From assembly GCA_946965045.2 (NCBI GenBank), contig OX337230.1, forward strand, positions 1,178,001-1,242,000: a stretch of 64,000 nucleotides of DNA, written 5' to 3'. Position 1 is the stretch's first letter. The number at the start of each line of letters is the position of its first letter. Made by a program: the position numbers and the translations under genes. Below are positions 47,373 through 64,000 of this stretch, piece after piece. The notes beneath the pieces were generated by a model. The model was given only the letters and a program-made list of their open reading frames with translations. It searched no databases and was not told the DNA's origin. Origin of the DNA: Epithemia pelagica. Lineage: Eukaryota; Protista; Bacillariophyta.

Positions 47373-50222
47373 CTATGAGGAATTGCCTCCAGTAACCTTT
47401 TCCCCGGGGTGCTTGGTTGGTGCTGCTGTTGTGGTAGAGTCATTCGATTCCATTATGGCATGTTCAATTCGTTGGAGGAGAATGCGTTGCACCAATTCTT
47501 TTCGGTCCGAGTACTCAGGATTCCCAGAAGAAGAGGAGGATCCTTCCGTACCATCCCTCGCCGAAACACGCTCCAATCCATCCGACCAAACCATCCGAGT
47601 TGGGGGTCCTTGCTGCGGCTGTGTACCATTCCTCGCCGAAACATGCTCCAATCTATCCGACCAAACCATCCGAGTTGGGGGTCCTTGCTGCGGCTGTGTT
47701 TCATCCCTCGCCCAAACACGCTCCACATCCCTCGCCCAAACCAGTTCCAGAGGCACAGGATCCATGGCGGAGTCCTCTTCCATATAATTATCATTACAAT
47801 CCCCACACACAAAGTGCATATCATTTGGAAACCGGCTTACAACCTCCCCTCCTGTGGCAAAGACTTCGTTTCGATTGGACGTTGAAGGGGGGCTTCCCGG
47901 AGGTCCTCCACCTGAGTAGCCATCAGTCGAGGTATCCTCTCTCGGGTTGGCGCTACTTTCGTTGGATCCTTCGATTTTCATGAGGGCGCTCAATCCTTCC
48001 ACCGCTTCAATCATATCCAGGCTTGCAAAGACTCGTGCTCGGTCCATTTCGATCTTCTCTGTCCTCGGCCTTCCATTTTCGTGAGGATTGGATGTTGTTG
48101 GTGCATGACCGCCATCTGTCCCAAGACTTGCTGAATCTGTCGTTTCCTCGGTATCCGTGTCCATGGCAACCACGTCTGTAGTATTCTCCACAATCGCGCA
48201 ATATTTTGGTTTCTTTGAGTTTTGGCTGCTCCTCCCTCGAAACCAATCCCTCCCCGCCATGGATTTTAAAATCATAAAAGTGGTGGAATAATCTCTTACA
48301 CGGGCAGCCTTTTCGACTGGGAGAATGGAAACAGAATCCGACAAGGTTGGACATGCTCCCTTTTCCAACAAGAGTTGTGCTGTCCCAAAATGTCCATTTC
48401 GACACGCAAGGTGTATGGGGGTACATCCTTGTCGTTCCTTCCGTTCAATCATGTCGTGCTCGGGTATACGAGTGCCACGCACGGCACAACACAAGTCCAG
48501 GACGAGGCGTAGACCGTCGCAGTGACCCCCAGCGGCGGCATAATGGACCGCGTTCCAACCAAGTCTACAGGTCCGTTCCAGACAGGCACCTTCGCCAATG
48601 AGAAACTGAATCATACCACTGTACCCTTGTTGACATGCATAGTGCAGTAACGTAGAATCATCTTTGCCGTTGCAGGAATCAATCAATGCGCCTCTTCGAA
48701 GCAACAGAAACACAATTAAATGAAAGTTTCTCTCAAGCGCAGCAAAGGCCGGAGAGCATAGCTTGCCATCGTGATATCCCGGTATGTTGGGACAAGCACC
48801 ATGGTCTAGCAGCATGGACGCCTTGGCTTCTGCACCAAATAGGCAGGCATGATAGAGGGCCGTACACTTTTCATTGTCTTGCTCATTGATGAAATTTTGT
48901 GCCATGACATCCCCAAGGGCGTGGTAAATCTGCGTCAAAATCAACTCCAAGGTGCCTCTCCAATCTGGTTGGTAGCTCCGGACACAAAAATGAATGACGG
49001 TCCAGCGAAATCGATTCCTCGCACGAAGATCTGCACCCGCGTCAATGAAATGCTCAATTCGTTCTTGATCACCATCAAAACAAGCTTTATGAAGAACCGT
49101 GGTTCTGATTAACAGGAAGAGAAAAAGACGGCAATGGTATAAGAGTTCAGGAATGTGTTGAAAAGAAGACAATGGTTCAGACCAAACCCCAGTGTACTCT
49201 TACCTTTCATATCCATTGTGAGCATTCACATTGGCGCCTCCAAGCAGCAACAAATCTACAACGGCCATGTGAGACAGTTGGTAGGCCAAATACAAGGGAG
49301 TGAAACCACACTCATCCGTAGCATTCACGTCTGCTCCATAGTCAATCAACATGTGGATAATCTCGGTATTTCGGTAATCCCTACAGGCACAATGGAGCGG
49401 CGTTCCCAGAGAATTGCTTTGAATGTGAACTTGTGCTCCTTGGTTCTTGACTAAATGAGCTACGAGCTTTTGGTTGGCGGGGCCATGAAGGTCCGTGTTT
49501 GTATTGTGATTGAAGGGTTGCTGAAAGACGGGAGAAGTGCAGGCCCAATGTAAGGCCGTACTACCGTGTCTATCCAAGGTGCTAATGGAAGCTCCAAGTT
49601 CCATTAGACAAAGAGCGTTGTCATACAAGCCATGCATACAGGCAATGTGCAGAGCTGTGAATCCATCACTCGTCATGGTTTTGACATCCACTCCCCCCTT
49701 TTGCACCAAGAGCCGAAGAATTTCCTTGTCCAGACCATCCTGTTTGGCGGCCACATGGATCGCAGCACTTCCAATGTCGTTTTGGACCGACAGATCGACC
49801 TTGTGTTGGATAAGATATCGGATGATATCGATTTGATTCGCTTCTGTGGCCACCATGAGCGCCGAATAGCCATCCTTCCGCACTTTGTTGCCATTCGCAC
49901 CTTCACTCAACAAAAGCTTCACGACCGCCAGAGACCCCGTCCGACACGCCAGCCCCAGTGCCGTCAAGGTTTGTTTTCCAAATTCACGGCTCGCCGGGAC
50001 TTCATACATATGGTCCACTTCCGCACCCCGGTCAATCAAATATTGCGCAATGGAAACGTGATTTTCGGCGCACGCGACCCACAAAGGGCTCTTATTGTCC
50101 TCGTCGCTGGACGACGATTCCACCGTATAGCTTCCGCTGTTTAAGAGAAACCGCACTTTGCCCAAATGACCTTCTCTACAGGCGGAGTGCAACGTCCTCT
50201 TTCGTCCCGACTTTCGTTTCAT
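47373..50222 (-). CDS. Ankyrin-repeat protein; 2 exons, ~916 aa
   Basis: Many TALHxAC/GADVN units. Intron 49203-49105 (gtaaga...aatcag) joins GYER to TTVLHKAC in frame, merging the 345-aa and 599-aa ORFs. Confidence 0.9.
47548..47741. repeat. Coding tandem repeat: 75-nt unit x~2.4 plus a 24-nt sub-duplication
   Basis: 47548-47622 and 47623-47697 differ at 3 positions. They encode TQPQQGPPTRMVWSDRLEHVSARNG-like 25-aa units in the ankyrin protein tail. Confidence 0.92.
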
Positions 50223-51575
50223 CTTTTCATGGAGCAACCTGGAAAAGACAACGACAATTTGGATAGAAACAGGAAACAGGACACAGTCGCGTGCACTCTC
50301 AGTCCATGATATGGATGATGGATTCGTTCCCTCATTCGTTCCCCTAAAAGGTGCGACTCAAAAGAGACTCTTTTTCTGAAACCAGGTAGCTACCATACTC
50401 TTTACTTGTAGGAGTAGAAGTAAGTCCTCTAGTAGGAGCACTCTACTACCTAGAGGTAGAGAGGTGGAAGGTGGAAGCCCAAGAACGATGAAAGCCTCCG
50501 CCTACCTCAAACCTCAACGACAACCTTGTTATTTCTTCCACAGTCCAAGTTTTGGAGATTACTATATCCGTATACAATAGGCAATCCCTCGAGGTTGGAG
50601 ATGGTGGAATAGGAAGCAGAAATGGCCTCTCGTCAATGCTCCTTTGCACTGCCTTGTATTGCCTATATACACCATATGTCCTCTCGTGATTCTACAAAGA
50701 AAACTCCTTCTCCATCGACCGGCTCGTCTTTGAACGTTGCTCGCACGGTCAGTGACCTGTGCCAGTAGACGAACATGTATCCTTCGCTAATCGCAACGAA
50801 TGATATCATTTGCTTGGTGCACCATACGAAACAGGACTACACTCACCCATCTGCAATTCCCACGACACACATCTATTCATTGCAGACCATAGCGATGAAT
50901 GGCGCATCTCTCTATCTCCAGCGAAACATGAGACACATGAGTGAATTGGGAAAGTTCTGTGAGCCGCCACGCGCTCCTCTTCGTGTGGTGGGAGTCGCAA
51001 AAGATCCCAAACGATTGTCGAGAACACTCGAGCGGTTCCCACGCAAGACTGAGGCTTCTTTGCACGACACCCTCGGAGGCAGACTCTCGCATGCCACTTG
51101 CTTGCCGTGGGCCTCCTCTAAATGAAACTTCTCATGGGCTCTCTCATTCCAGTAACGGTAGGCAAGGCTTAAACCAGAAATTCCTCGACGAGCGTACCCG
51201 TCACACAGGACGGTGCTCTTTGTATAAGCCTTAACGCATATACCCATTAAAAAGATTGAAACTACGCTTGTCACGTAAAATAGGTACGTGGGATGCCAAT
51301 CGATGAGGTGTGATCATGGGGGATGCTCGACTCCCAGAGTGAATTAACGGGAAAAGCAGGTCTCGCCTCTTTTTTTGGAATTTCTTCTGGGATCGCGCTC
51401 TCAAATACACAACTCAGAGAATAGTCTTGGCCTTTCTCGTTTTTTAGAGTGAGACGATTGATCTCTGGTTTTGTTATCTTGGTTACGCACTTTTTCAATA
51501 TTTATCCAAGATTGACAAACCATTGACGGTGTCATATACAAGAGAAGCTCATTCCACAAAGCAGAGTTTCGAATC

Positions 51576-54500
51576 ATGCGCTTAACCCGACGGAGTGGCG
51601 CCATGGCACCACAAGAGGTGCATTCGGATGACGAGAATGATCGAACGGAAGGGGATGTGCAAAGGGTTTCGCAAACTCGAACCATGACAATACCAGTCAT
51701 GTGTTCGCGGCGAATTTCGGTCGATACGGACGTTTCAATACATCGCTCGTATGACTTTGCCAACATTCAAGCGGACAAGGGGGGAGAAATGAAGGAACAG
51801 GCACAGTTTGTGGGAAACGAGTCACATCAGGCGGATACCATCACATGCAGTAGCGAAGACGATGACGAAAATTTTCAAGATGAATCGTGTGCACCGTCCC
51901 GAAACAATTTCACTGTTTGGGGACAACGAACTCATGACAACAATATGCATACCTACTATCATTTTTCGGATCGAATAGGATCCTCACAGAGCCAACCTCT
52001 CGTCACCATGGGTGGAATAGAAGAGCCGTTCAAGGGACAAAAAAAGAGACAGGCTGGCCATTGCGGATGCCTCACTAGGAAGGGTCTCGTAGGTTTGGTT
52101 GGTTTCATTGCTCTCGCTCTTGTAGGAGCAGTGCTGGGAGCCCTGCACTGGTCCAATAGTGAGAATCTGCCGTCTCCTTTGCAACACGATGATTCTTCAC
52201 CACGTGAAGCTCCAAATGTAAGTCATCTCAAAAAGTTTCTTTGTTTGTGTTTTCTTAGACTCACATAATCTCTTTTTGTCATAGTCCACCAAGACTACTC
52301 CACCAACGCTAGACCATATAGGTGTTGCGGTATGGCAGCAGTACACAGGTACTAGGGGCTCTGGGTTCGGATCAGCTGTCGTGATTCAAGAGAATTGGGT
52401 TGCAATTGGATCGCCTCAAGGAGATTCCGTCAGCACGTATTTTCAAAGACCCGGTGGTTATTGGGAACGAGTCGAAGACGTGGTGCCATATAATGGCGAA
52501 CCGTCGTTGTTCGGCAGCACAATTGACTTTTGCTACAATATGTCCAGGCACACCACTCCATACATGATTGTGGGCGCACCAGAAGCTGCGGGTGGAGGAA
52601 ATGCTCATGTGTATGAATATCTTCAATATGCAAATGGCTGGAAGCTGATGGACGCCCCGTTGTTTGCTCCCGGCGAAGCTGCCGAGAGAGACGATGCCAA
52701 GTTTGGTTCCTCTGTAGTTATTATAGAAAACCGAAAAGTTGTGATTGGAGCACCGCAATATGGTACGGATAACCGTGGGAGCGTCTTCACTTTTCAGTAC
52801 AAGCTCCTTGGTTCAGACGGAGCACAAGAGACGTACGGATGGGTTCCCGTTGCCTCGGCCACTGTATCCGGAAGTTCTGCAAATGCCCAATTTGGTGCTG
52901 ATTTGGACATTACTGCGGATGGAAATACTCTGGTTGTGGGGGAGCCAAATCAGAACAAGTTTACAATATTCGATTGGGTGGAGACTGACAAGGTATGGAA
53001 AGAGTCTTTTACTTTCACATCAGCGCGAGAACACATTGATTTTGGTAGTTCGGTGGTCTTCTTGTCATCCTCTTTTGTGGCTGTTGGAGCGCCCTCTGCA
53101 AACTCTAACGCCGGGCTAGTTAGTTTGTTTGAAAAGGACACCAGAACGGATACTTGGTCCTTCCGCCAGAGTTTTCAAGGAGAAGCATCGGATCGCCTGG
53201 GTGCCAAAGGTAGAGTGAGCGGTTCTCATGGACCATGGGGAACCCAGTTGGCCGTTGCCACACAAAAGGGCTACATTCAACGCCATGATCTGGTGGTACT
53301 TGGTACAATGTCCTATGTCATTGTAAAGCGATACACCGTCAACATTACGTCTGCAACTTCAATTGATGTGGAAGCTGATGAAGATGGCTTTGTGGTTGTG
53401 GCCGGTTACGGTCAATCGGATCTTGTTTTCATGTATGGGCCGCCATATGAAACCGACGACTCAGAGACACCGGAAAGAACGAAAGATCCTAATTCCAAAC
53501 AGATTGTGGGTGAAATGGTCGGTTCCAACACGTTGTCTGACGGTAGAAGGGCCTATGGATCGGCTGTTGGGGTGACAGGAGATATCCTGGTGGTAGGACA
53601 GCCACTGCAAAATAAGGGCACTGGTTCCGCTGAAATCTTGCACCGGTCATCGAAATGGACTCCGATAGACTCTATTGTGAAGCCTGGAACACAAGAATTT
53701 GGTTCCGCAATTTCCTTGAGACTCAGGAATGGTAAATTCAATCTTCTTGTTGGATCGAAATCCTCCGCTCACGGTTCCACGAGCCTGGCCAACTACGGCT
53801 CTGCTCACTATTACGAATTCAATGAAGACAAGAGCTGGAGTCAGGTCGGACAGTCTCTTTATCCAGGATTTCACGTGGACGAGGCGGGTGGTGAATTTGG
53901 TGCAGCAGTGGCCATGTCTTCGGGTGGACCCGTTCGTAGAATCGCGATTGGTGCACCAAGCAGCAGTACAGGCTCGTTCAACTATTACAATGGACGTATC
54001 TTCACCTTTCAATACAACGGTACATCCTGGGAATCCATGGCATCTCCATCTGTTGGTAGTCCTAAGAGCTTTCTGGGATCTGCAGTTGACATGATGGCGG
54101 ATGGTTCTCGATTGCTTGTCGGGGCACCGGGAGCGGACAAGGCTTTTTACTCAACTTGGAATGAAGCATCGTCGTCCTGGGATGAAGTTTTTGCAGCAAA
54201 GGGGAAAACAGGTGAAGCGTTCGGGTCGTCCGTCGCTGTTGCATCTGACGATGGAACCTTGATTGCAGTCGGTGGGCCTGCCTACGATGGTGGACGTGGA
54301 GTGATTCGCATGTACGCCCAACAAAGTGAAGGTAACTCCTTTCTTCAAGTGGGTGATGATATTATCGGAAATATCGGAGAAGGTGTTGGGCTGACACTTT
54401 GTGGAGGCAAAGGCCGTATCGCAGTTGGGACCGAGTTTGGATTCTTTCGGGTCTATTCCGTGGATGCGGGAAAGTGGCAAGAAATAGCCCATGGAGGCGT

Positions 54501-54600
54501 TGAGGGATCTCCTGTCGTATCTATTGCCATGTCAGAAGATGGCGGAACAATTGCTACTGGACTTGCCAACGAGCAAGTGTGGGTCTACAATATCTCATGA
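51576..54600 (+). CDS. Type II membrane protein with two FG-GAP (integrin-alpha-like) beta-propellers; 2 exons, ~985 aa
   Basis: Exons 51576-52217 and 52285-54600 (gtaagt...tcatag, phase 0). TM LVGLVGFIALALVGAVLGAL follows a basic patch. Repeated FGxxV...xxVGAP blades. Confidence 0.88.
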
Positions 54601-55503
54601 ACTGGTTCGCACCATGAACAGCGCAATAGTACGTGATAAATTGATCGTCAGACTGGGGTCATCCATGTCCATGGAATGGAGCATTACGGAACCTTGTGGG
54701 GAGAAAAGCATCGTGGTTAAGTGCATCCTTGCAGAATATCTTCAAGAGCACATTCTCGGTCGTCCATGTACTCCTTTTTTAAAATCAAATCGAGGCATCC
54801 TGTGAGACAAGAAATCCTCCGAAAGCGGAAAGACTGATTTTGTTTTCTTGATTGAATTGAGACATCTGTACATGGTTTGCCTTACTGAAACGGAAAAGCA
54901 ACGTTCGGTCTTGTGTTGGCTATCGACAGACGAACTAGGAACGACAACCGAGAGCAATGGATCGACAAGCGCAAAAACTTGGAAAACAACAAAAGTATCA
55001 GATGCTAAGAATATCTGAATTGTTAAATGTAATTATATGTATTGCACAAAGCTGATAGCAAGTACCATGTTGTTGTCGTTTTGGTTGACGAATTTGTAGC
55101 TGTTTCACAAACAGGCACAATACTGTGAAGTCACACATATCCTTTCTCGCCCTTGTCGCGTTACATTTCCGTCCAGTTGCAGTGTCATTGCCACTGGTCG
55201 CTACGCCACGTCCTCGCTGAGTGCAACGGCCAGCATGGAAATTTCCCAATGGACAACACAGGAACAGCACATTACATGCTAACAAGGGATAGAATTATAC
55301 AGGTATTATGCACGAAGCTGCTAGGAGTATGAATTGTAATGTTTTTGTTGTCGTCGTCGTGAATATGCGTCATGAAAACAACAACGACAACGACAAGGGT
55401 GGCAAGGGATGTTTCTCGCGAGTCGAGCCTCGTACTGTTGTGAGGCCCACCGTGTTTGCCGCAGCGTTGTTATTGCTGTCGTTATTGTCGTTGTTGTTGG
55501 TTG

Positions 55504-57870
55504 TTATAAAAAGGCGTAGACTTCCGTGACATCTCCTACCATGGTCACGGCGACCGTGGTCCCATCCTCGGAGAGTGCCACGGCCACGATTGGGAGTGGA
55601 ACGGAAATGGAACTGACGGGAATCCAATCCGTGTCGTCTGGTCGATAGTCATAGATACGAACCGTGTTGGTCGACGTGGTTCCAAAACACAAGCGTCCTT
55701 GACGACCGGCCAAGGTAGTTCCAATCCGTTCTCCCTCTTGCAATCCTTGAATGGGATTTCCCAAGGGGACATAGGTATTGCCAAATTGTCCGTAGGCACG
55801 AATCGATCCTTGTTGATTGGTTCCAAACGACGGACTGCCGACGGCAATCCATTCGGCCGAATCCGACAAAATGGCGACCGAGGCCCCCAATTCTTCATTG
55901 TCCGTCCCGGCCAAGGCAAAGACAGTTTCCCATTCCATCCCCGTTTCGTTCCATTGATAATAGGCAAAGGCGCCATTGGTCCCTTCAAAGACGGGGGCAC
56001 CCGTCAAGAGGTAGGTACCATCGTGGGACAAATCCAAGGCTTGTCCAATCCGAGCCACCGGACTGCCTTCGAGGGCATTACTGGGTTCCACCCAATCCGT
56101 CCCGTCAAAGTCAAAGGTAAAGATGCGACCCGACGCAAAGAGTCGGGGCACACCTCCAATGGTAAGATTGACCAAACTAAAGGGAGCACCAACCACGACA
56201 CGACGAATCGTTGTGGCCATGGACACTTCAAACCCAAATTGGCCATCGATCTGCAGTTCGGTGGATGGAGGACGCATGGGAGAGCCCAAACGGACCCAGG
56301 CTTGTGCTTCTCCGTCAAAGGTATAATACTCGGCCGATCCAAAGGCAATGTTTTGTTGTTCCGTTTCTGGGGCTCCTACCATGAGGCTGAGACCATCCAC
56401 TGCACGAACCAAATCGACGGACGATCCAAACGACAAGGCCCCTTCTTGTCCGGCCGAAACATCGACTGTGGTCCCGTCTTGCAATTGACTCGTTCGCACC
56501 AACCCTCCTTGGTCCACGCCTGGCACACCAATGGCCACAAGGTCGTCCATCAAGGCCACACTGCCGCCCGTTGGATCGGTACTGTCGGGAAAGGTAAATT
56601 CGGCAATGCGAGACACGAGCGACGGCGCCGCCGAAACGGTGGGAGGGGCCGTGGGAGCGGGTGTACTCACGGGCGCCCGGGTCGGCTCGTGGGTCGGTAA
56701 CCGAGTGGGAACCACGGTAGGGTCGCGCGTCGGAGATGTGGTAGGATTGCGGGTGGGAGTACCTGTGGGTGATACGGAGGGAGGATTGGTTGGATTCACG
56801 GTTGTTGGAATGTTGGTTGGATTCACTGTGGGATCCTCCGTGGGAGTGCTGGTTGGATGCACGGTGGTGGGAGTGGTGGTGGGCAACTCCGTCGGAGACA
56901 CTGTGGGTGCTGCAGTGGGTGACACGGAGGGTGAAGCCGTCGGAGCTGGTGTCGGGCGTGGTGTCGGTCCCGAAACGGGTGGATTAGAGGGAGCAACTGT
57001 GGGCCGAGTGGTGGGAACAGTGGTCGTTGGAATGGCCGTTGGCACCACGGTAGTCGGCTCCACAGTGGTAGGAGACCCACTGGGTGATTGGGTTGGAAGT
57101 TCGGTGGGTGTCTCAGTGGCGGCGGGAGCGGCAGTCGGCGATGGAGTGGGTGGTTCCAGACTGGGCGGGGCCGTGGTGGGATCGACGGGTTCCAGGGAGG
57201 GTGACGTGGTAGGTGGTGCCGTTGTCGGAACCAAGGTGGGTGTCGGGGTAGTGGGTGGTACCGTTGTGGGGGCCACGGTTGGCACTCGGGTGGGTGTGGT
57301 GGGAGTTGTGGGTGCATCGGTCGGTCCTCTCGTTGGTTGTGGAGATTGAGCCAGTGTGGGTGGGAAGAGGGTGGCCAGTTCGCCATTGACTGTGGCACAC
57401 ACGTAAAAGACGGTATCCCAATACTGCTCCACACTCAAAAATTCCTCGCTAATGACAATGTCCGCGCGGGCACCCACGCAACAATGATTGTCGCCCGTCA
57501 AGTACACGCATTGCGTACAGGCTTCGGAATAAAAAATCGTGATAAAATTGAGCTGGTCCATGGGACGGTCGATTCGATTCCCGGATTGAATCGTCACAAA
57601 GTCTCCAAACTCATCACGGTTCAAGCGCAGGTCGCCATTGGCATCGCCCAATTCCATATTCGTTATACACGTCGAGAGAGCATCATCGTCTTGTTGTTCC
57701 AGAGACCGTAGCTGCGATTGTCGTTTGGCTCGATAGAACAAAGAGGAGGAGGAGGAAGAAGAAGAAGTGGCAGCACCACGTAGCAGGGTTCGAGCAAAGG
57801 GTGTATCTTCACTGCTACAAGCACGTACAAGTGTCAACAGTAATAACACGACAACATGTGGTTGAATCAT
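55504..57870 (-). CDS. Secreted protein: signal peptide, EF-hand-like/Cys-rich domain, PT-rich mucin-like stalk and one FG-GAP propeller, ~788 aa
   Basis: MIQPHVVVLLLLTLVRACS signal; DANGDLRLNRDEF loop; ~240 aa of PTxxPT repeats; FGSSVDL..LMVGAP and FGFEVSM..VVVGAP blades; no C-terminal TM. Confidence 0.88.
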   Translation of the reverse strand: MIQPHVVVLLLLTLVRACSSEDTPFARTLLRGAATSSSSSSSSLFYRAKRQSQLRSLEQQDDDALSTCITNMELGDANGDLRLNRDEFGDFVTIQSGNRIDRPMDQLNFITIFYSEACTQCVYLTGDNHCCVGARADIVISEEFLSVEQYWDTVFYVCATVNGELATLFPPTLAQSPQPTRGPTDAPTTPTTPTRVPTVAPTTVPPTTPTPTLVPTTAPPTTSPSLEPVDPTTAPPSLEPPTPSPTAAPAATETPTELPTQSPSGSPTTVEPTTVVPTAIPTTTVPTTRPTVAPSNPPVSGPTPRPTPAPTASPSVSPTAAPTVSPTELPTTTPTTVHPTSTPTEDPTVNPTNIPTTVNPTNPPSVSPTGTPTRNPTTSPTRDPTVVPTRLPTHEPTRAPVSTPAPTAPPTVSAAPSLVSRIAEFTFPDSTDPTGGSVALMDDLVAIGVPGVDQGGLVRTSQLQDGTTVDVSAGQEGALSFGSSVDLVRAVDGLSLMVGAPETEQQNIAFGSAEYYTFDGEAQAWVRLGSPMRPPSTELQIDGQFGFEVSMATTIRRVVVGAPFSLVNLTIGGVPRLFASGRIFTFDFDGTDWVEPSNALEGSPVARIGQALDLSHDGTYLLTGAPVFEGTNGAFAYYQWNETGMEWETVFALAGTDNEELGASVAILSDSAEWIAVGSPSFGTNQQGSIRAYGQFGNTYVPLGNPIQGLQEGERIGTTLAGRQGRLCFGTTSTNTVRIYDYRPDDTDWIPVSSISVPLPIVAVALSEDGTTVAVTMVGDVTEVYAFL

Positions 57871-59704
57871 TTCCAATTTGGTTTCCAAACGACGACGGCG
57901 ACGACGGCGACTCGGTGGCCATCTTCTTCTTCTTCTTCTTGGTTGGACCGTACCGTCAAGCATTATTTGGACTCAATCACAACAAGGTATATCGAGTTCC
58001 GACAGCGGGATGGAGAGCTCTGTCCTCTTTCAACGGATCAGCAAGGGAGTTGCTTGCCGCAAAACTCGAACCACTTTTCCTTGAGGTGCGCCACAACAAC
58101 AACGTCCCTTGTTGTTGGCATGACTTGTAGTACTACGAAAGAGATGATTTCAATCTTCCATTGGAACCACCAAGTATGTGTGGGATATCCTAGCCGCGGC
58201 GCACCTTTTGCCGCCAGGACCACGGGAACGCCCACCGTGCTCTATGTATCCATGTGACATGTACTTCCAAGCGGTAGATAGTATTCGTGAACGAAGAGAT
58301 CCCGTGGTTTTGCCCCACCGGGCGATCCTTCCTCCCTCATGTCCTGGGACTGTGGGATTGCCACAATGGTGAACGACGAGAATCACGCTCCTTACCTAAA
58401 CAACGGGCTGGTGTGGCCATAGAAGAGAGTGGTCTGATGTGGAGGAAGCACTAGGAAGAGATGGATGGATGGAATGACTGTTGATTCATGTCGGGTCCAG
58501 TTGGTGCGTTTTGGTGTCCATCCCTCGGTGGAGGTGGCACTTTCACAGTAGACTTTTCTTCTTCCGGATTCCCTACTACGATGAAGGAGGCATGTTGGAA
58601 GAAATAATACTCCTCTCGAGAGAAAACTCACCTTGGACTTAGTGTCCCTGTCCCCTTCCGTTCATCAACACCCTATGGACTTCTTGGACTGTCCCGAGTT
58701 TGGACACCGTGAACTTCGCGCTGTGGGGGACATAAATCAGTCCCACATAGACAACGCTGGAGTGTATACATCACCGCTTCTGCGGGAAATTCCTACGATC
58801 CGTTGCGGGTGGTCGCAGTTCTTGGAGTATGGCCGAATTCGTCCAAGGGTTATTGCCCGTCACTAGCAACTACAGAAAAATTGCGCCCAACAGACATTTG
58901 AGACAGTTCAACGGTCCAAACAGCGAGCTCCACCAAACACCCAAGCCGCACACACATACGATTGCTACCTAGTCAAACTCTATGCTGAGTGACGAAGTAG
59001 AGGCTAGCTGCACATTAAAGAGATAAACTAAGATCTAATGGAAAATGGTGCTTTTATCAGCCACCAACAGTCAGTGAAATCGCTTCTAACCTTATCTCAA
59101 GCCGTACTAAGTCAGATGGAAGAAGTAGCTTTAGTAGAAAGGAGCTGTCAATCAATGCGCAGCTCATCTATAGTCCGCAGTCACCCCTGGATCTACTCTG
59201 TTTAGCCGTAGCATAATGGGAGTATCGCCATTTGCATCGATATATAGCATCGCTATCCATCTTTCCTTGGGTCACATAGACCACCATCCACGATTGAATA
59301 GTTATGTCTGTGTCTGTGGGGCACAATATTTGAAAGAATTAGGCGAGTGTCCAGATTTTGAGGTAAATCCCGGATTGCTTTCTAGGCCCTGGTCATGCAG
59401 TTGGGTTTGGGATTGGGAGGTTCTAAGTTGACAATGGATTGTTTTCTCAGAATAATTTTAGACCCCAAAACATACTCCTATCACCTATCACCTCCTACCT
59501 AGTATGAGAATTGCAAACTCATGGAACCACAGCTGACTATGTATGGCCACGATCAGGGGGAATAGGGAATAGGACCTGCCTAATAACCACTTTGGCTACG
59601 ACGTTCCAAAGTATATTTAGAATTATACAACGGCACACAATATAACCTCTACGCGACATACCGTCAAGTTGACGTTTGATGGAGTTTGTGGTATTATTCT
59701 TCTT

Positions 59705-62700
59705 TTATGCCAGATCATAGACCACAACTTCTTCGTTGCTCAATCCCACAGCGACCGAGTTGCCATCTGCGGCCATACTAATGGACACGACCGGTTGGCC
59801 AAGATTGGGGCCACTGGAGATTTCTACCCAATTCTGGCCAACCAACTCGTACGCCCGGAACGATCCATTGGCAGTACCAAAGCACACACGACCCTTGGCT
59901 CCCGACAAGGTCGTTCCAATGGCTTCCCCATCGGCTCCCACAATGTCTTCATTTCCCAACTGCTGGTAGAATCCGGGATTGGATTCGTAGAAAATTCTGA
60001 CCCTACCCTTGTCCTGACCAAATGTCGGTGCTCCAAAGGCTATAATGGTGCCTGCGGGGTCCAAAATGGACACGGTGGTTCCCAAACGTTCACCTGGACT
60101 GCCTCGCATTGAAACGAGAGAGTCCCATGCAGTACCGTTCCAGTTGTAAAAATAGATTCCCCCGGAGTTGCTGATGTGACCTGGTGCCCCAACCAAGAGC
60201 TTGTCCCCGGTAGTCGACATGGAGACGGAGGTACCCACTAGATTGTTGGGCTCGCTGCCAACAATGGGACCACCAAATGGAACCCAATTCATACCATCGT
60301 AATCATAAATGTAAACCTTTCCGGAATTGGTTCCGGATACGCCATTACCTCCACTGTTGGGTGCTCCAATAGCAAACCGTAACTTATCCGAGGCTATCGA
60401 CACGGAGGTCCCATACATGTCACCGTTGACATTATCGAAAAACTGTGGACGAAGGCCCAACGGATCTCCGACCGCGTTCCAGTTATTCGTTGCCAAGTCT
60501 CGTTGGTAGATGTGCGCCGATCCCAAAATGTTGAGTTGCCCATCATAGCTTTCCGTCGCTCCAACAACAATGGTAGGCACGTTGCCGATCATTGCTCCAT
60601 CGACCGCAAAGCCATACTTGATGGTATCTTGGGCAAAGCCCGAGTCATCCAGTACCCACTCGGTATTGCCTCGTTCGTAAATGGCAACATCTCCATATTC
60701 CGAGGCTCCACCCAAGGGTTCTCCAATGGCCAAAAAGTCTCCTATCAAAGCCACATCGTGACCAAACTCCGTGTTACCAAGATTGGAGTTGGTACTCGAA
60801 AAGGGCCCCCCGGCAAGTTGCCATTCCTTTGGTGGACCCGTGACGGGCGACATGCTCGGTTGACCGCCGTTTTGGGGTTGTCCTGCATAGAGTACTGCTT
60901 CTTGACCAGTTCCGTGTCCGGCCAAGACCATGTAATCATCGCCGGTACTGTAGGCTGCTATGGCACTGACCGACGACGGTCGGGAAACGGAATAGCGTCG
61001 GACCCACTGGGTACCACCAATCAAATCCCATCGTTCGACAATTCCTGATTCCATTCCAATGACCAATTCAGGTCCATTGGGTCCTTCGTGACCACTGACG
61101 GTATTAATGGCGCCAATCTTGTCACCTCGAACGGCACCTTTCAACACGGGCACGGCCCTCCAAATGGTTCGGTCTTGGTTGTCAATTTCAAAGACTTGAA
61201 TAGCCCCACGGTTGCTTTCGAACGAGGGTGCCCCGACCGCCACATAGCGGGGGGACAAGAAGGTGACCGAGCTTCCAAAATCCGTGTATTGCGTCGACAT
61301 GCTATGTTGAAACACTTTTAGCCACGCATTGCCATCAAAATTGAAAATGGCAAAACTGGAGATACCCGGTTCTCCCACGGCCATGTAATTTCCATTGTCC
61401 GTAATGGCCACATCTTCTCCAAACCTTGAATTGGCCGTTTGGCCAATAATGGCTTCGTTGGGGACCATGTTTCGGGCTACGACCGAGCCACCAGGTTGCA
61501 CATCGTATTGATAGGTGTAAACGCGTCCTGCAGCCGTGCCTTGAAAGTCATGTTGCGGAGCTCCAATGACAGCGGTCAAGCTTTTACTGAGTGCCACGGC
61601 GTTGCCAAAGTTTTCCGCTGTCATCGACAAGGTGGGTTCTCCCTGGAGGATGGAGCCCTGCATTTCCCACGCATTACTGGCAGAGGAACTATCGTACTTG
61701 TACAAAAAGGCATGGCCTTCTCCATTGCTGCCAGCGTCGGGAGCTCCCACCAACAAAAAGGCATCGTTGCTGGTAGAGGATGGCTTGACAATGTCAATGG
61801 CAGCACCAAAGGCACTGTTGGGCGTGCCAGAAATGTCGTCCACAAATTGCCATTGCGAACCGTCGTTGAACATGGCACTGACCAGACCACTCGAGGTCGG
61901 ACCGGCCGTCGTAGAACCACCGCTATTCAAGGAGGGAGAACCCACAGCCATCCAATTGTCATCCATGGCCACGGTCGTTCCATAACTTGTTGATCCGGTC
62001 AATTCTTGTACAATGGACAAGGGAAGTTCACCAGGTGTTGGCATCATGGTGGTCTACAAAAAGGACAACGTGAAAGACGACAAACAAAACAGTTGACCAC
62101 ACATGGGTGAGACGACACAGTTTTGCAAACCTCTCCGCTTTTTCTCGGACAAAGACAACACTGAATCCATGGCTCAAGACAACGTACCGAAACGGGACTC
62201 GGCGTGGGTGCCGGAGTGGGAGCCACGGGTGCATTGGTGGGAGGGTCGGTCAAGTCCACTTCTTTGGTAGTGGAGTCGTCATCATCATCATCATTCATGC
62301 TTGTGACCAAAAAGGTGATACCAATCGCCAAACCAATGGCAAACAAAAAAAGACAGGCACAAATCAAGAGCATGAGCAAAAGCATTTTCTTGGCGCGTTT
62401 GTGACGTCGTTGACTTTGCACACTGGATCGGGTCGCGACACTGTGCGAATCTCGAACCAACCGTTTCCGATTGTTTTGTTCTTCATCGTCTTGATAATAT
62501 TGGGCTTCCACTTGATTGTGCCATTCTGCCACACGAGAAAAATGTTCTGGTTTGCTGCTATTGTCATCGTCCACCACCGGTGAGGTGGCGGGAGGTTCGT
62601 CGGAAAAGTATTCGGACGGTTCGACCATGCTAGGATTGCGTTGCGCCGAGGACTGACTCGATCGCATCTGGTTGGTAGGTGGTGGTGGAGCCTGACGGCC

Positions 62701-62979
62701 ATTGGAAGGAGGTCCTCGTCGAGAATTTGTTTGACGTGGTGGCGGAGGACGACGAGCCGAGGGTTCCTTGGCGGCCTTGTATTGATTCCCCGAAGATGAC
62801 AGTGGTTCAAACTCGTCTTTTTTCATGGTACTCATGTCGGGGCCCATAAAGCCAATGGTACTCACACCATCCTTACTGGCCATTTCTTCTACGTAGATGC
62901 TTCGCGGACCAAAGGTAAACTCGGAATCCACATCGGGTCCATAGGCACTATTGCCCGTGTTGTTCTGATCAGACATCAT
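59705..62979 (-). CDS. Type II membrane protein with two FG-GAP beta-propellers (paralogue of 51576-54600); 2 exons, ~1046 aa
   Basis: Exons 62979-62188 and 62053-59705 (gtacgt...ttgtag, phase 0). RRHKRAKK precedes TM MLLLMLLICACLFLFAIGLAIGITFLV, followed by FG..GAP blades. Confidence 0.9.
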
Positions 62980-63648
62980 CTTGGCTTGAGTGTTCTTGCC
63001 CCTTTTGCTTTATGGCTTGCTCTCTCGACCTTGTCGGTTTGGCTGCTGCTGCCAAAGAAACTCCAATCAATATAACAGCAGGTGCGAGTCTAGTCCTTGT
63101 GTTTGGCCAACAAACAAGACAACCGTGGTGTATTCAAAGGATCGTCACACAACACGACGATTTCTCACAAAAGTGCTCTTGGTTCGGAAATGGGACACGG
63201 TGGAACCCAAAAACAGTGAGCGAGTTTGTGTTGGGTTTGCTGGAACCACTTTCTTGGGTGTGGGCCTGCCAGCTTCCGAAATCTGTTGGGTGTCGTCTAC
63301 TCAATGATGTGCAGTGGCATCCCCAATAAAATGTCTCATCCATGGGGGCTTAAGTAAAAGCAAGATGAGCGCACTTTTCTCACTCGGAACCTTTTTGTGT
63401 CATCGTCTTGACCTTCTCACGGGATCGCGCACCCAGTGAGCACCCCCTATTTCTTTTTGTCATGTCAAGAGAGAGCCCCCCTTCACCCTTCACGTCTCGA
63501 TAGGGTCTATTGAAAAGTTGTCTAGGAGTAACAAAGACAAGAGAAAAGGAAAGCACAAGGTCTAGTGTTTCCAAAAGCATATCGTTAACGTGGATTCGTT
63601 CAACTAGTTATCCAAGCCATCCGAATGATTGACTGCTCTTCTTGGTGC

Positions 63649-64000
63649 TCATGATTTTTGTCCCAGCTTTTTCTTTTTGAGTACATTGGAATCCATAATC
63701 ATGCCCATGAGTGGATTGACGGCGGGTCGTGGTTTTTCCGGTTCCTTTTGCATACTGTCCATAATATCTTTGGTTTTGGGGATATGGACTTGTTCGAGAT
63801 TGGACCGAATGTCAATTTCATTGGCCTCCACAATGGAACCAATGTTTTGCAAATGGTATTCCTCCAAAAAGAAGCGTTCAATTTTCATCACCTTACTCAC
63901 TGTTTTGGTCAAGTAGGCACTGATATCAACCTTTGTTGGATCGGTGTAATCGCTGCAATCCGGATTGACCGTGACCCATACCGTCGATTTGACGTGATAT
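63649..64000 (-). CDS. CAPZB: F-actin capping protein beta subunit, 3' portion (runs off the window)
   Basis: YHVKSTVWV..ISAYLTKT..HLQNIGSIVEANEIDIRSNLEQVHIPKTKDIMDSM parallels the CapZ-beta consensus [35 protein letters not shown]. Confidence 0.8.
   Translation of the reverse strand, partial: YHVKSTVWVTVNPDCSDYTDPTKVDISAYLTKTVSKVMKIERFFLEEYHLQNIGSIVEANEIDIRSNLEQVHIPKTKDIMDSMQKEPEKPRPAVNPLMGMIMDSNVLKKKKLGQKS

Follow-up and report, generated by a model that had tools for sequence, protein, structure and literature searches.

Introduction

Diatoms build, stick, glide and mate through their surface with receptors that are almost unknown. Among the closest systems described so far, the Seminavis robusta protein Sro637_g179400 and the orthologous proteins of Pseudo-nitzschia multistriata and Skeletonema marinoi combine an unknown N-terminal domain, one transmembrane (TM) segment and, at the C-terminus, a beta-propeller, bearing in S. 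robusta an InterPro integrin alpha propeller signature, and in all three species show induction during sex (PMC8027222). The FG-GAP proteins TpSSP14, TpSSP24 and TpSSP34 were detected in Thalassiosira pseudonana, in the proteome associated with its silica (bioRxiv 10.1101/2021.09.18.460806), and a stramenopile expansion of integrin-like FG-GAP/EGF surface proteins, with introns and with signal peptides or TM segments, has been described in the diatom parasite Pirsonia (PMC13524835). The model of diatom gliding requires a molecular continuum across the plasma membrane (PMC11420354). Here we analyzed three genes, A, B and C, located within a stretch of 64,000 nucleotides of Epithemia pelagica (contig OX337230.1, positions 1,178,001 to 1,242,000 of the forward strand), hereafter the window, which a preliminary description had presented as a cluster of three integrin-alpha-like FG-GAP propeller genes and a candidate adhesion system.

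A, B and C are further members of an already known, functionally uncharacterised diatom family. On balance, sequence comparison and structural models make it probable that the three proteins are cell-surface binding proteins of this large family and not integrins.

Results

Gene models and predicted membrane topology of A and C

The three sets of open reading frames (ORFs) reported in the preliminary description were found at their positions in the window with the quoted motifs, and the resulting models of the two larger genes are given below.

51576-54600, plus strand: gene A, two exons of 214 and 771 codons joined in phase 0
51576-52217, plus strand: gene A exon 1 from the ORF, with a predicted cytosolic N-tail of ~170 amino acids, the signal-anchor TM segment and the beginning of a Pro-rich stalk
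about 52086-52142, plus strand: predicted signal-anchor TM segment of gene A, from hydrophobicity and positive-inside flanks
52218-52284, plus strand: gene A intron, 67 nt, GT..AG, phase 0, from a spliced contig
52285-54600, plus strand: gene A exon 2, a short stalk and two tandem seven-bladed FG-GAP_2 propellers, stop codon at 54598-54600
about 52324-53487 and 53488-54597, plus strand: gene A propellers, from PF14312 and collinearity with gene C
59705-62979, minus strand: gene C, two exons of 264 and 782 codons joined in phase 0
62188-62979, minus strand: gene C exon 1, predicted cytosolic N-tail, TM segment, acidic and then Pro-rich stalk
about 62857-62946, minus strand: conserved N-terminal motif of gene C, from the alignment
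62323-62379, minus strand: predicted TM segment of gene C, from hydrophobicity and flank charges
62054-62187, minus strand: putative gene C intron, 134 nt, GT..AG, phase 0
59705-62053, minus strand: gene C exon 2, stalk end and two seven-bladed propellers
about 60878-62026 and 59708-60832, minus strand: gene C propellers

Exon 1 of gene A contains a single hydrophobic segment (residues 171-189) with a flank charge of +5 before it and -1 after it, and the sole hydrophobic segment of gene C (residues 201-219) is flanked by +6 and -5 respectively. As the charge is positive before the TM segment and negative after it, we infer that both are type II proteins, with their N-tails inside and their propellers outside. 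The two-propeller, type II architecture of the preliminary description was thus supported by the single TM segment, the positive N-side flank and the 28 strands (seven blades) found for each propeller. A Pfam scan of ten cytosolic tails of the family returned nothing above noise, and the tails are conserved between orthologues (26-38%), not between paralogues. At the extreme N-terminus of gene C lies a motif in which 11 positions are invariant, shared by this genome, the 1095-residue relative P0002, the second species discussed below (L001), Epithemia and the paralogue L004, which is likely to be a docking site as predicted from the alignment. An RGD triplet in gene C was considered as a meaningful motif and discarded, being a chance outcome of the recurrent xGDxxG frame that is missing in P0002.

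The introns were evaluated on reads placed on positions 51500-57490, covering genes A and B, from run X1, a DNA run, and run X3, for which no library type is recorded. X3 contigs span 51613-55061 and 55277 onward, skipping the 215 nt that separate A and B at their convergent 3' ends; as this gap is covered by X1, X3 was taken as RNA. One X3 contig, extending far to either side, contains the joint 52217>52285 of gene A and omits exactly 52218-52284, while the X1 contig across the intron is unspliced, so that gene A is spliced as predicted. Exon 1 of gene A is overlapped by the X3 contig starting at 51613, gene B is covered by the X3 contigs from 55277 onward, and genes A and B are transcribed. 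Two short gene A contigs also occur in the environmental metatranscriptome X6.

For gene C, the GT..AG sites and the reading frame, a stop codon at 62044-62046 in the unspliced frame and the uninterrupted relative P0002, a single 1095-aa ORF on a 3.4-kb contig that comprises a tail, a membrane helix and both propellers, point to the intron given above. Of the two phase-0 introns proposed in the preliminary description, that of A is confirmed by the spliced contig and that of C is supported by its splice sites, its frame and P0002. X3 contains 76% of the words sampled from 53000-62990, and since this exceeds what genes A and B could supply, gene C is probably transcribed as well.

Gene A has orthologues in the L001 species and, with 57% identity, in Epithemia (P0115), and those of gene C are P0002 (56%), P0003 (53%) and the Epithemia locus L014 (60%). 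As a side observation, the assembly shows more than 30 single-base differences from the X3 and X1 contigs within gene A (52428-54564) and a handful within gene B (55500-57490), and allelic divergence seems uneven across the propeller-gene cluster.

Gene B, a single-propeller member

Gene B lies between A and C and comprises the following features.

55504-57963, minus strand: gene B, single exon of 819 codons, from the ORF
about 57814-57870, minus strand: putative signal peptide, from a short N-terminal hydrophobic stretch and the signal peptide of the orthologue
57355-57732, minus strand: Cys-rich domain with an EF-hand-like loop (residues 78-203)
about 56614-57363, minus strand: Pro/Thr/Ser stalk, from composition
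55507-56640, minus strand: one seven-bladed propeller, from the AlphaFold2 model and fold matches

Hydrophobicity analysis of gene B revealed no TM segment, the short N-terminal hydrophobic stretch being the only feature detected. Its orthologue in the L001 species, 39% identical overall, bears a textbook signal peptide, and residues 201-450, a stalk of ~250 residues, consist of 58-68% Pro/Thr/Ser. These data agree with the secreted protein with a mucin stalk that had been proposed: gene B appears to be secreted, and its stalk is probably heavily O-glycosylated, as judged from composition. The product is expected to reside in the surface coat or matrix.

The first ATG adds 31 residues before the signal peptide (57871-57963), including arginine runs of six and seven; as the orthologue is without this arginine-rich extension, translation may in fact start at the second ATG. 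A low-complexity run of GTT/AAC type in the 3' UTR region (55466-55499) pulls unrelated metatranscriptome contigs (X5, X6), which could be mistaken for expression evidence.

The Cys-rich domain spans ~125 residues, includes one EF-hand-like loop and shows no Pfam match above noise, and its conservation in the orthologue amounts to 61%; its reading as an EF-hand (Atlas score 0.82, without a Pfam match) is only a lead. It occurs in four copies in the genome, two of them preceding a propeller and two in other ORFs; the further copies are as follows.

G000:C3:3240442-3240822: Cys-rich domain
C7:3419655-3420008: Cys-rich domain
C8:1548035-1548355: Cys-rich domain

Fold of the propellers

Exons were searched and folded separately, not as joined proteins, and AlphaFold2 models were built on family alignments of 18 and 22 sequences. 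In the Pfam search, PF14312 (FG-GAP_2) matched gene A with E 1.2e-12 (48.2 bits) and gene C with E 3.7e-22 (78.7 bits), against a gathering cut-off of 23 bits. Gene B showed no Pfam match at E<0.1 and was assigned to FG-GAP_2 by Atlas features (0.95) and by fold. The model of the gene C head (pLDDT 85.6) consists of two all-beta domains with 28 strands each, while that of the gene B head (pLDDT 91.5, pTM 0.92) forms seven four-stranded blades, with an N-terminal strand closing blade 7.

When the gene B head was compared with the Protein Data Bank (PDB) by Foldseek, the top 49 matches were all integrin alpha. A representative-wide search likewise returned integrin alpha for the ten best chains, with Z scores of 32-36.8 and a root mean square deviation (rmsd) of 2.7-3.2 A over 331-345 residues, while generic WD40 propellers reached a Z score of 31 at most, about 5 Z units below integrin alpha. 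The relationship extends to sequence, as the family profile matched integrin alpha-4 (E 3.7e-15), alpha-M and alpha-X (to E 1e-13) among PDB sequences. The integrin-alpha-like nature of the propellers claimed in the preliminary description was thus borne out by profile, structure prediction and fold comparison. The whole 780-residue double-propeller model retrieved only generic tandem WD40 propellers, and a single-domain model was needed for the fold search.

Predicted FG-GAP_2 propellers were closer still, with TM scores of 0.85-0.88 and rmsd values of 2.2-2.5 A. Their fusion partners include capsid proteins of giant viruses, flagellin, type IX secretion cargo and tails, sortase and Ig-like adhesins, and on these grounds the fold neighbours are taken to be surface-displayed proteins. 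The terminal propeller signature that had been regarded as distinctive of the three genes is present in A, B and C; it corresponds to a degenerate FG-GAP_2 repeat pair and also closes the N-terminal propellers, and its supposed distinctiveness did not hold.

The invariant positions of the propellers are almost all Gly, Trp, Pro and Val, with one Arg and one Thr, and no catalytic-looking residue constellation was found among them. As these residues are nearly all Gly, Trp, Pro and Val, a scaffold and not an enzyme is expected. Some beta-propellers are enzymes, and virginiamycin B lyase and CylK occur among the generic fold matches of the gene B head with lower Z scores, as would suit polysaccharide lyases or hydrolases of the propeller type with the extracellular matrix as substrate. 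However, the top matches are all integrin alpha heads, a conserved polar catalytic set was not seen and, to our knowledge, no enzyme exists in the FG-GAP_2 family, which makes an enzymatic function extremely improbable.

Other parts of an integrin were searched for within the three genes. A pattern search of all exons of A, B and C returned none of the Asp-rich nine-residue calcium loops of integrin alpha, and GFFKR is absent in the three proteins. There is no match to PF08441 (thigh/calf legs) in A, B and C, which end at the last blade; genome searches with PF08441 and with PF00362 (integrin beta) also gave no match, though the search control was silent too. Since the calcium loops, the leg domains and GFFKR are absent and the type I topology is missing, A, B and C are not integrins; in this respect the Pfam scan and the motif and charge analyses upheld the inverted topology and the lack of thigh/calf domains and GFFKR noted earlier.

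Paralogy and extent of the family

A and C align collinearly with 33% identity over 775 residues (E 6e-111), while the last 370 residues of gene B align best with the C-terminal propeller of each of the two, at 32% identity (E 2e-38) for C and 34% (E 1e-46) for A, and more weakly with the N-terminal propellers. The paralogy of the three genes is thus established, with identities of 32-34% and E values from 1e-38 to 6e-111, and because B matches both propellers of A and C, the double head would have arisen by an ancient duplication of a single propeller unit within the gene.

The genome (60.5 Mb) holds at least 11 paralogues, including two more genes 16-22 kb past the window end. Most have an upstream membrane helix and the layout tail, TM segment, optional stalk and propeller, with the propeller ending the protein; the type II layout was found in L003, L004, L006, L008 and L009. 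The signal-peptide type with the shared Cys-rich N-domain comprises gene B and the L005 gene, 2 Mb from gene B. The latter (G000:C3:3239947-3242151) joins an N-domain of B type to a propeller that falls in the gene C clade of the tree, which suggests domain shuffling in the family. A further variant is formed by L004 2482-4959 (G000:C3:1739-1741 kb) and P0151, in which the end of the last blade is missing and is replaced by a hydrophobic segment and a short charged tail; as it also has an N-terminal membrane helix on an upstream exon, this type may be anchored at both ends.

An exhaustive profile search gave 9160 representatives at E<=1e-30, mostly generic repeat proteins. Among the best 150 of these, about 60 end in a full-length terminal propeller of A/B/C type, and about 20 full-length relatives have one membrane helix before the propeller and tails that range in length from 165 to about 1700 residues. 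P0016 and P0017, considered as full-length relatives, turned out to be bacterial repeat proteins. Dozens of family clusters below 50% identity occur in public data, where the type II layout again predominates, and the named members, from Epithemia clementina and two Entomoneis, are all raphid pennates. The long tails of distant relatives are Pfam-empty apart from one DUF4056 match and one match, above the Pfam cut-off, to CCDC53, a WASH complex subunit, in the cytosolic tail of P0170 from public reads (residues 55-134, E 6e-10).

Maximum-likelihood analysis placed A, B and C in three separate, well-supported orthogroups, each with sequences of other species, and they are not mutual closest relatives. 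As each orthogroup spans other species, the cluster is old and not a recent tandem array.

Gene neighbourhood

The order A, B, C, capping protein beta, D is collinear in a second species (L001), with identities of 79% for capping protein beta, about 53% for C, about 50% for A and 39% for B. Epithemia clementina keeps C, capping protein beta, D and E, with C 60% identical, and its A orthologue lies a few genes off on the same contig, as judged by locus-tag numbering. The preliminary description had treated A, B and C as a three-gene unit, which proved to be an arbitrary cut through the cluster A-B-C-capping protein beta-D-E and through a genome family of at least 11 members.

The same data bear on the possibility that A, B and C work as one system, with A and C as anchored receptors and secreted B as their ligand or adhesive. 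Anchored and secreted forms are adjacent and their order is kept in the second species; nevertheless, the conserved block includes the unrelated capping protein beta and two more family genes, the three genes belong to separate old orthogroups, and a second B-type gene occurs 2 Mb away. We therefore regard a single receptor and ligand system as highly improbable.

Two neighbouring genes were also recorded in the window.

49200-50237, minus strand: ORF with ankyrin repeats (345 residues), immediately upstream of gene A
63637-64000: 3' part of the F-actin capping protein beta gene, a stable anchor within the propeller-gene cluster

A metagenomic relative, L002, likewise has an ankyrin gene neighbour; L002 was considered as a syntenic locus and rejected, since its collinearity with the window was not borne out.

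Discussion

The results are consistent with a mechanism in which A and C would insert with the N-terminus inside, exposing to the cytosol a tail of some 170-200 residues in which no domain is recognised and crossing the membrane by one helix. A short Pro/Thr/Ser stalk would then hold two rigid seven-bladed FG-GAP_2 propellers off the membrane, while B would be secreted, with its Cys-rich domain, long stalk and single propeller, and would form part of the surface coat or matrix. For the propellers, a role as binding heads without catalytic activity is predicted; their extracellular partner would be either a protein or a glycan-rich component of the wall or matrix, and the anchored members might couple contact outside the cell to paralogue-specific cytosolic partners. 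The surface location, binding in preference to catalysis and the coupling through the tails are inferred. Adhesion and motility, wall formation and mating are all candidates for the process served.

Several observations weigh against this assignment as surface binding proteins. Loop-class conservation is flat over the strands and both faces of the propeller, with no conserved or hypervariable binding face; the secretion signal of gene B relies on its short hydrophobic stretch and on the clearer signal peptide of the orthologue; and the family alignments behind the AlphaFold2 models are shallow (18 and 22 sequences). Moreover, the type II orientation fits a luminal location equally well, for example in the silica deposition vesicle. 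The proteins might then belong to the frustule, their propellers facing the lumen of this vesicle or the wall and serving to build or hold the silica and organic wall, and not adhesion outside the cell. A luminal head suits the type II topology, the FG-GAP label is shared with TpSSP14, TpSSP24 and TpSSP34 of the T. pseudonana silica proteome (bioRxiv 10.1101/2021.09.18.460806), and Pro/Thr/Ser-rich and Cys-rich modules are frequent in diatom extracellular proteins. On the other hand, the named relatives of A, B and C are all raphid pennates, and we regard a role confined to the frustule as unlikely, if the least unlikely of the alternatives considered here.

Type II propeller proteins might also be switched on in sexual reproduction and mediate cell pairing as mating or gamete-recognition receptors. 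Sro637_g179400 and its two orthologues, with the same described layout, are sex-induced in three species (PMC8027222), yet A and B are transcribed in the sole RNA-like run, where nothing suggests sexual induction, and with at least 11 paralogues such a role is possible for some members only; for A, B and C it appears decidedly unlikely. Binding at the cell surface, whichever process it serves, remains our preferred reading. Published leads favour sexual reproduction and the silica wall as much as adhesion.

As to adhesion, the preliminary description had proposed to look for such proteins in adhesive-trail proteomes, and this check gave no support, since the preprint on the adhesive-trail proteins of Craspedostauros australis mentions mucin-like and Cys-rich modules and no propeller or integrin-like domain. 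A further literature search aimed at FG-GAP in model diatoms found nothing. Because the named relatives, Epithemia and Entomoneis, are all raphid pennates and one relative carries a tail motif like CCDC53 of the WASH complex, it is conceivable, with a small chance in our estimate, that the membrane-spanning link in the adhesion and motility complex of raphid diatoms is formed by the type II double-propeller proteins. In that case the heads would grip secreted mucilage strands, B would be a partner on the matrix side, and the tails would be pulled along the raphe-associated actin.

The analysis defines a large and conserved family, anchored tail-first and carrying integrin-type heads, in terms of gene models, folds, a cytosolic motif and a gene neighbourhood, and offers concrete candidates for studies of adhesion, wall formation and sexual recognition.

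Comparison with known systems

With respect to diatom proteins already described, the layout of Sro637_g179400 is that of A, C and most family members, a likeness drawn from the described layout and not from sequence. TpSSP14, TpSSP24 and TpSSP34 are also diatom FG-GAP proteins outside the cytoplasm; they come from a centric diatom and are likened to A, B and C by domain label only. The Pirsonia proteins use FG-GAP_3 and EGF domains, while the Pfam scan found no EGF domain in A, B and C.

Bacterial and giant-virus FG-GAP_2 proteins are nearer, as A and C fall in the same Pfam family (PF14312), with 22-26% identity over the whole propeller, and in both groups the propellers are always fused to other modules. 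In bacteria and giant viruses these modules are type IX secretion tails, flagellin, capsid, sortase or Ig-like domains, whereas here they are a predicted eukaryotic type II anchor or a mucin-like stalk, encoded by nuclear genes, of which A is spliced.

The integrin alpha head shares with these proteins its seven four-stranded blades and detectable sequence homology, provides the best solved fold match, and is likewise the extracellular head of a single-pass membrane protein, as predicted here for A and C. However, integrin alpha is a type I protein with a C-terminal TM segment, while A and C appear to be type II, with the TM segment N-terminal to the propellers, and the present proteins carry two tandem propellers or one on a mucin-like stalk. 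The comparison suggests that a head of integrin type can do without the other integrin parts and be carried in the reverse membrane orientation.

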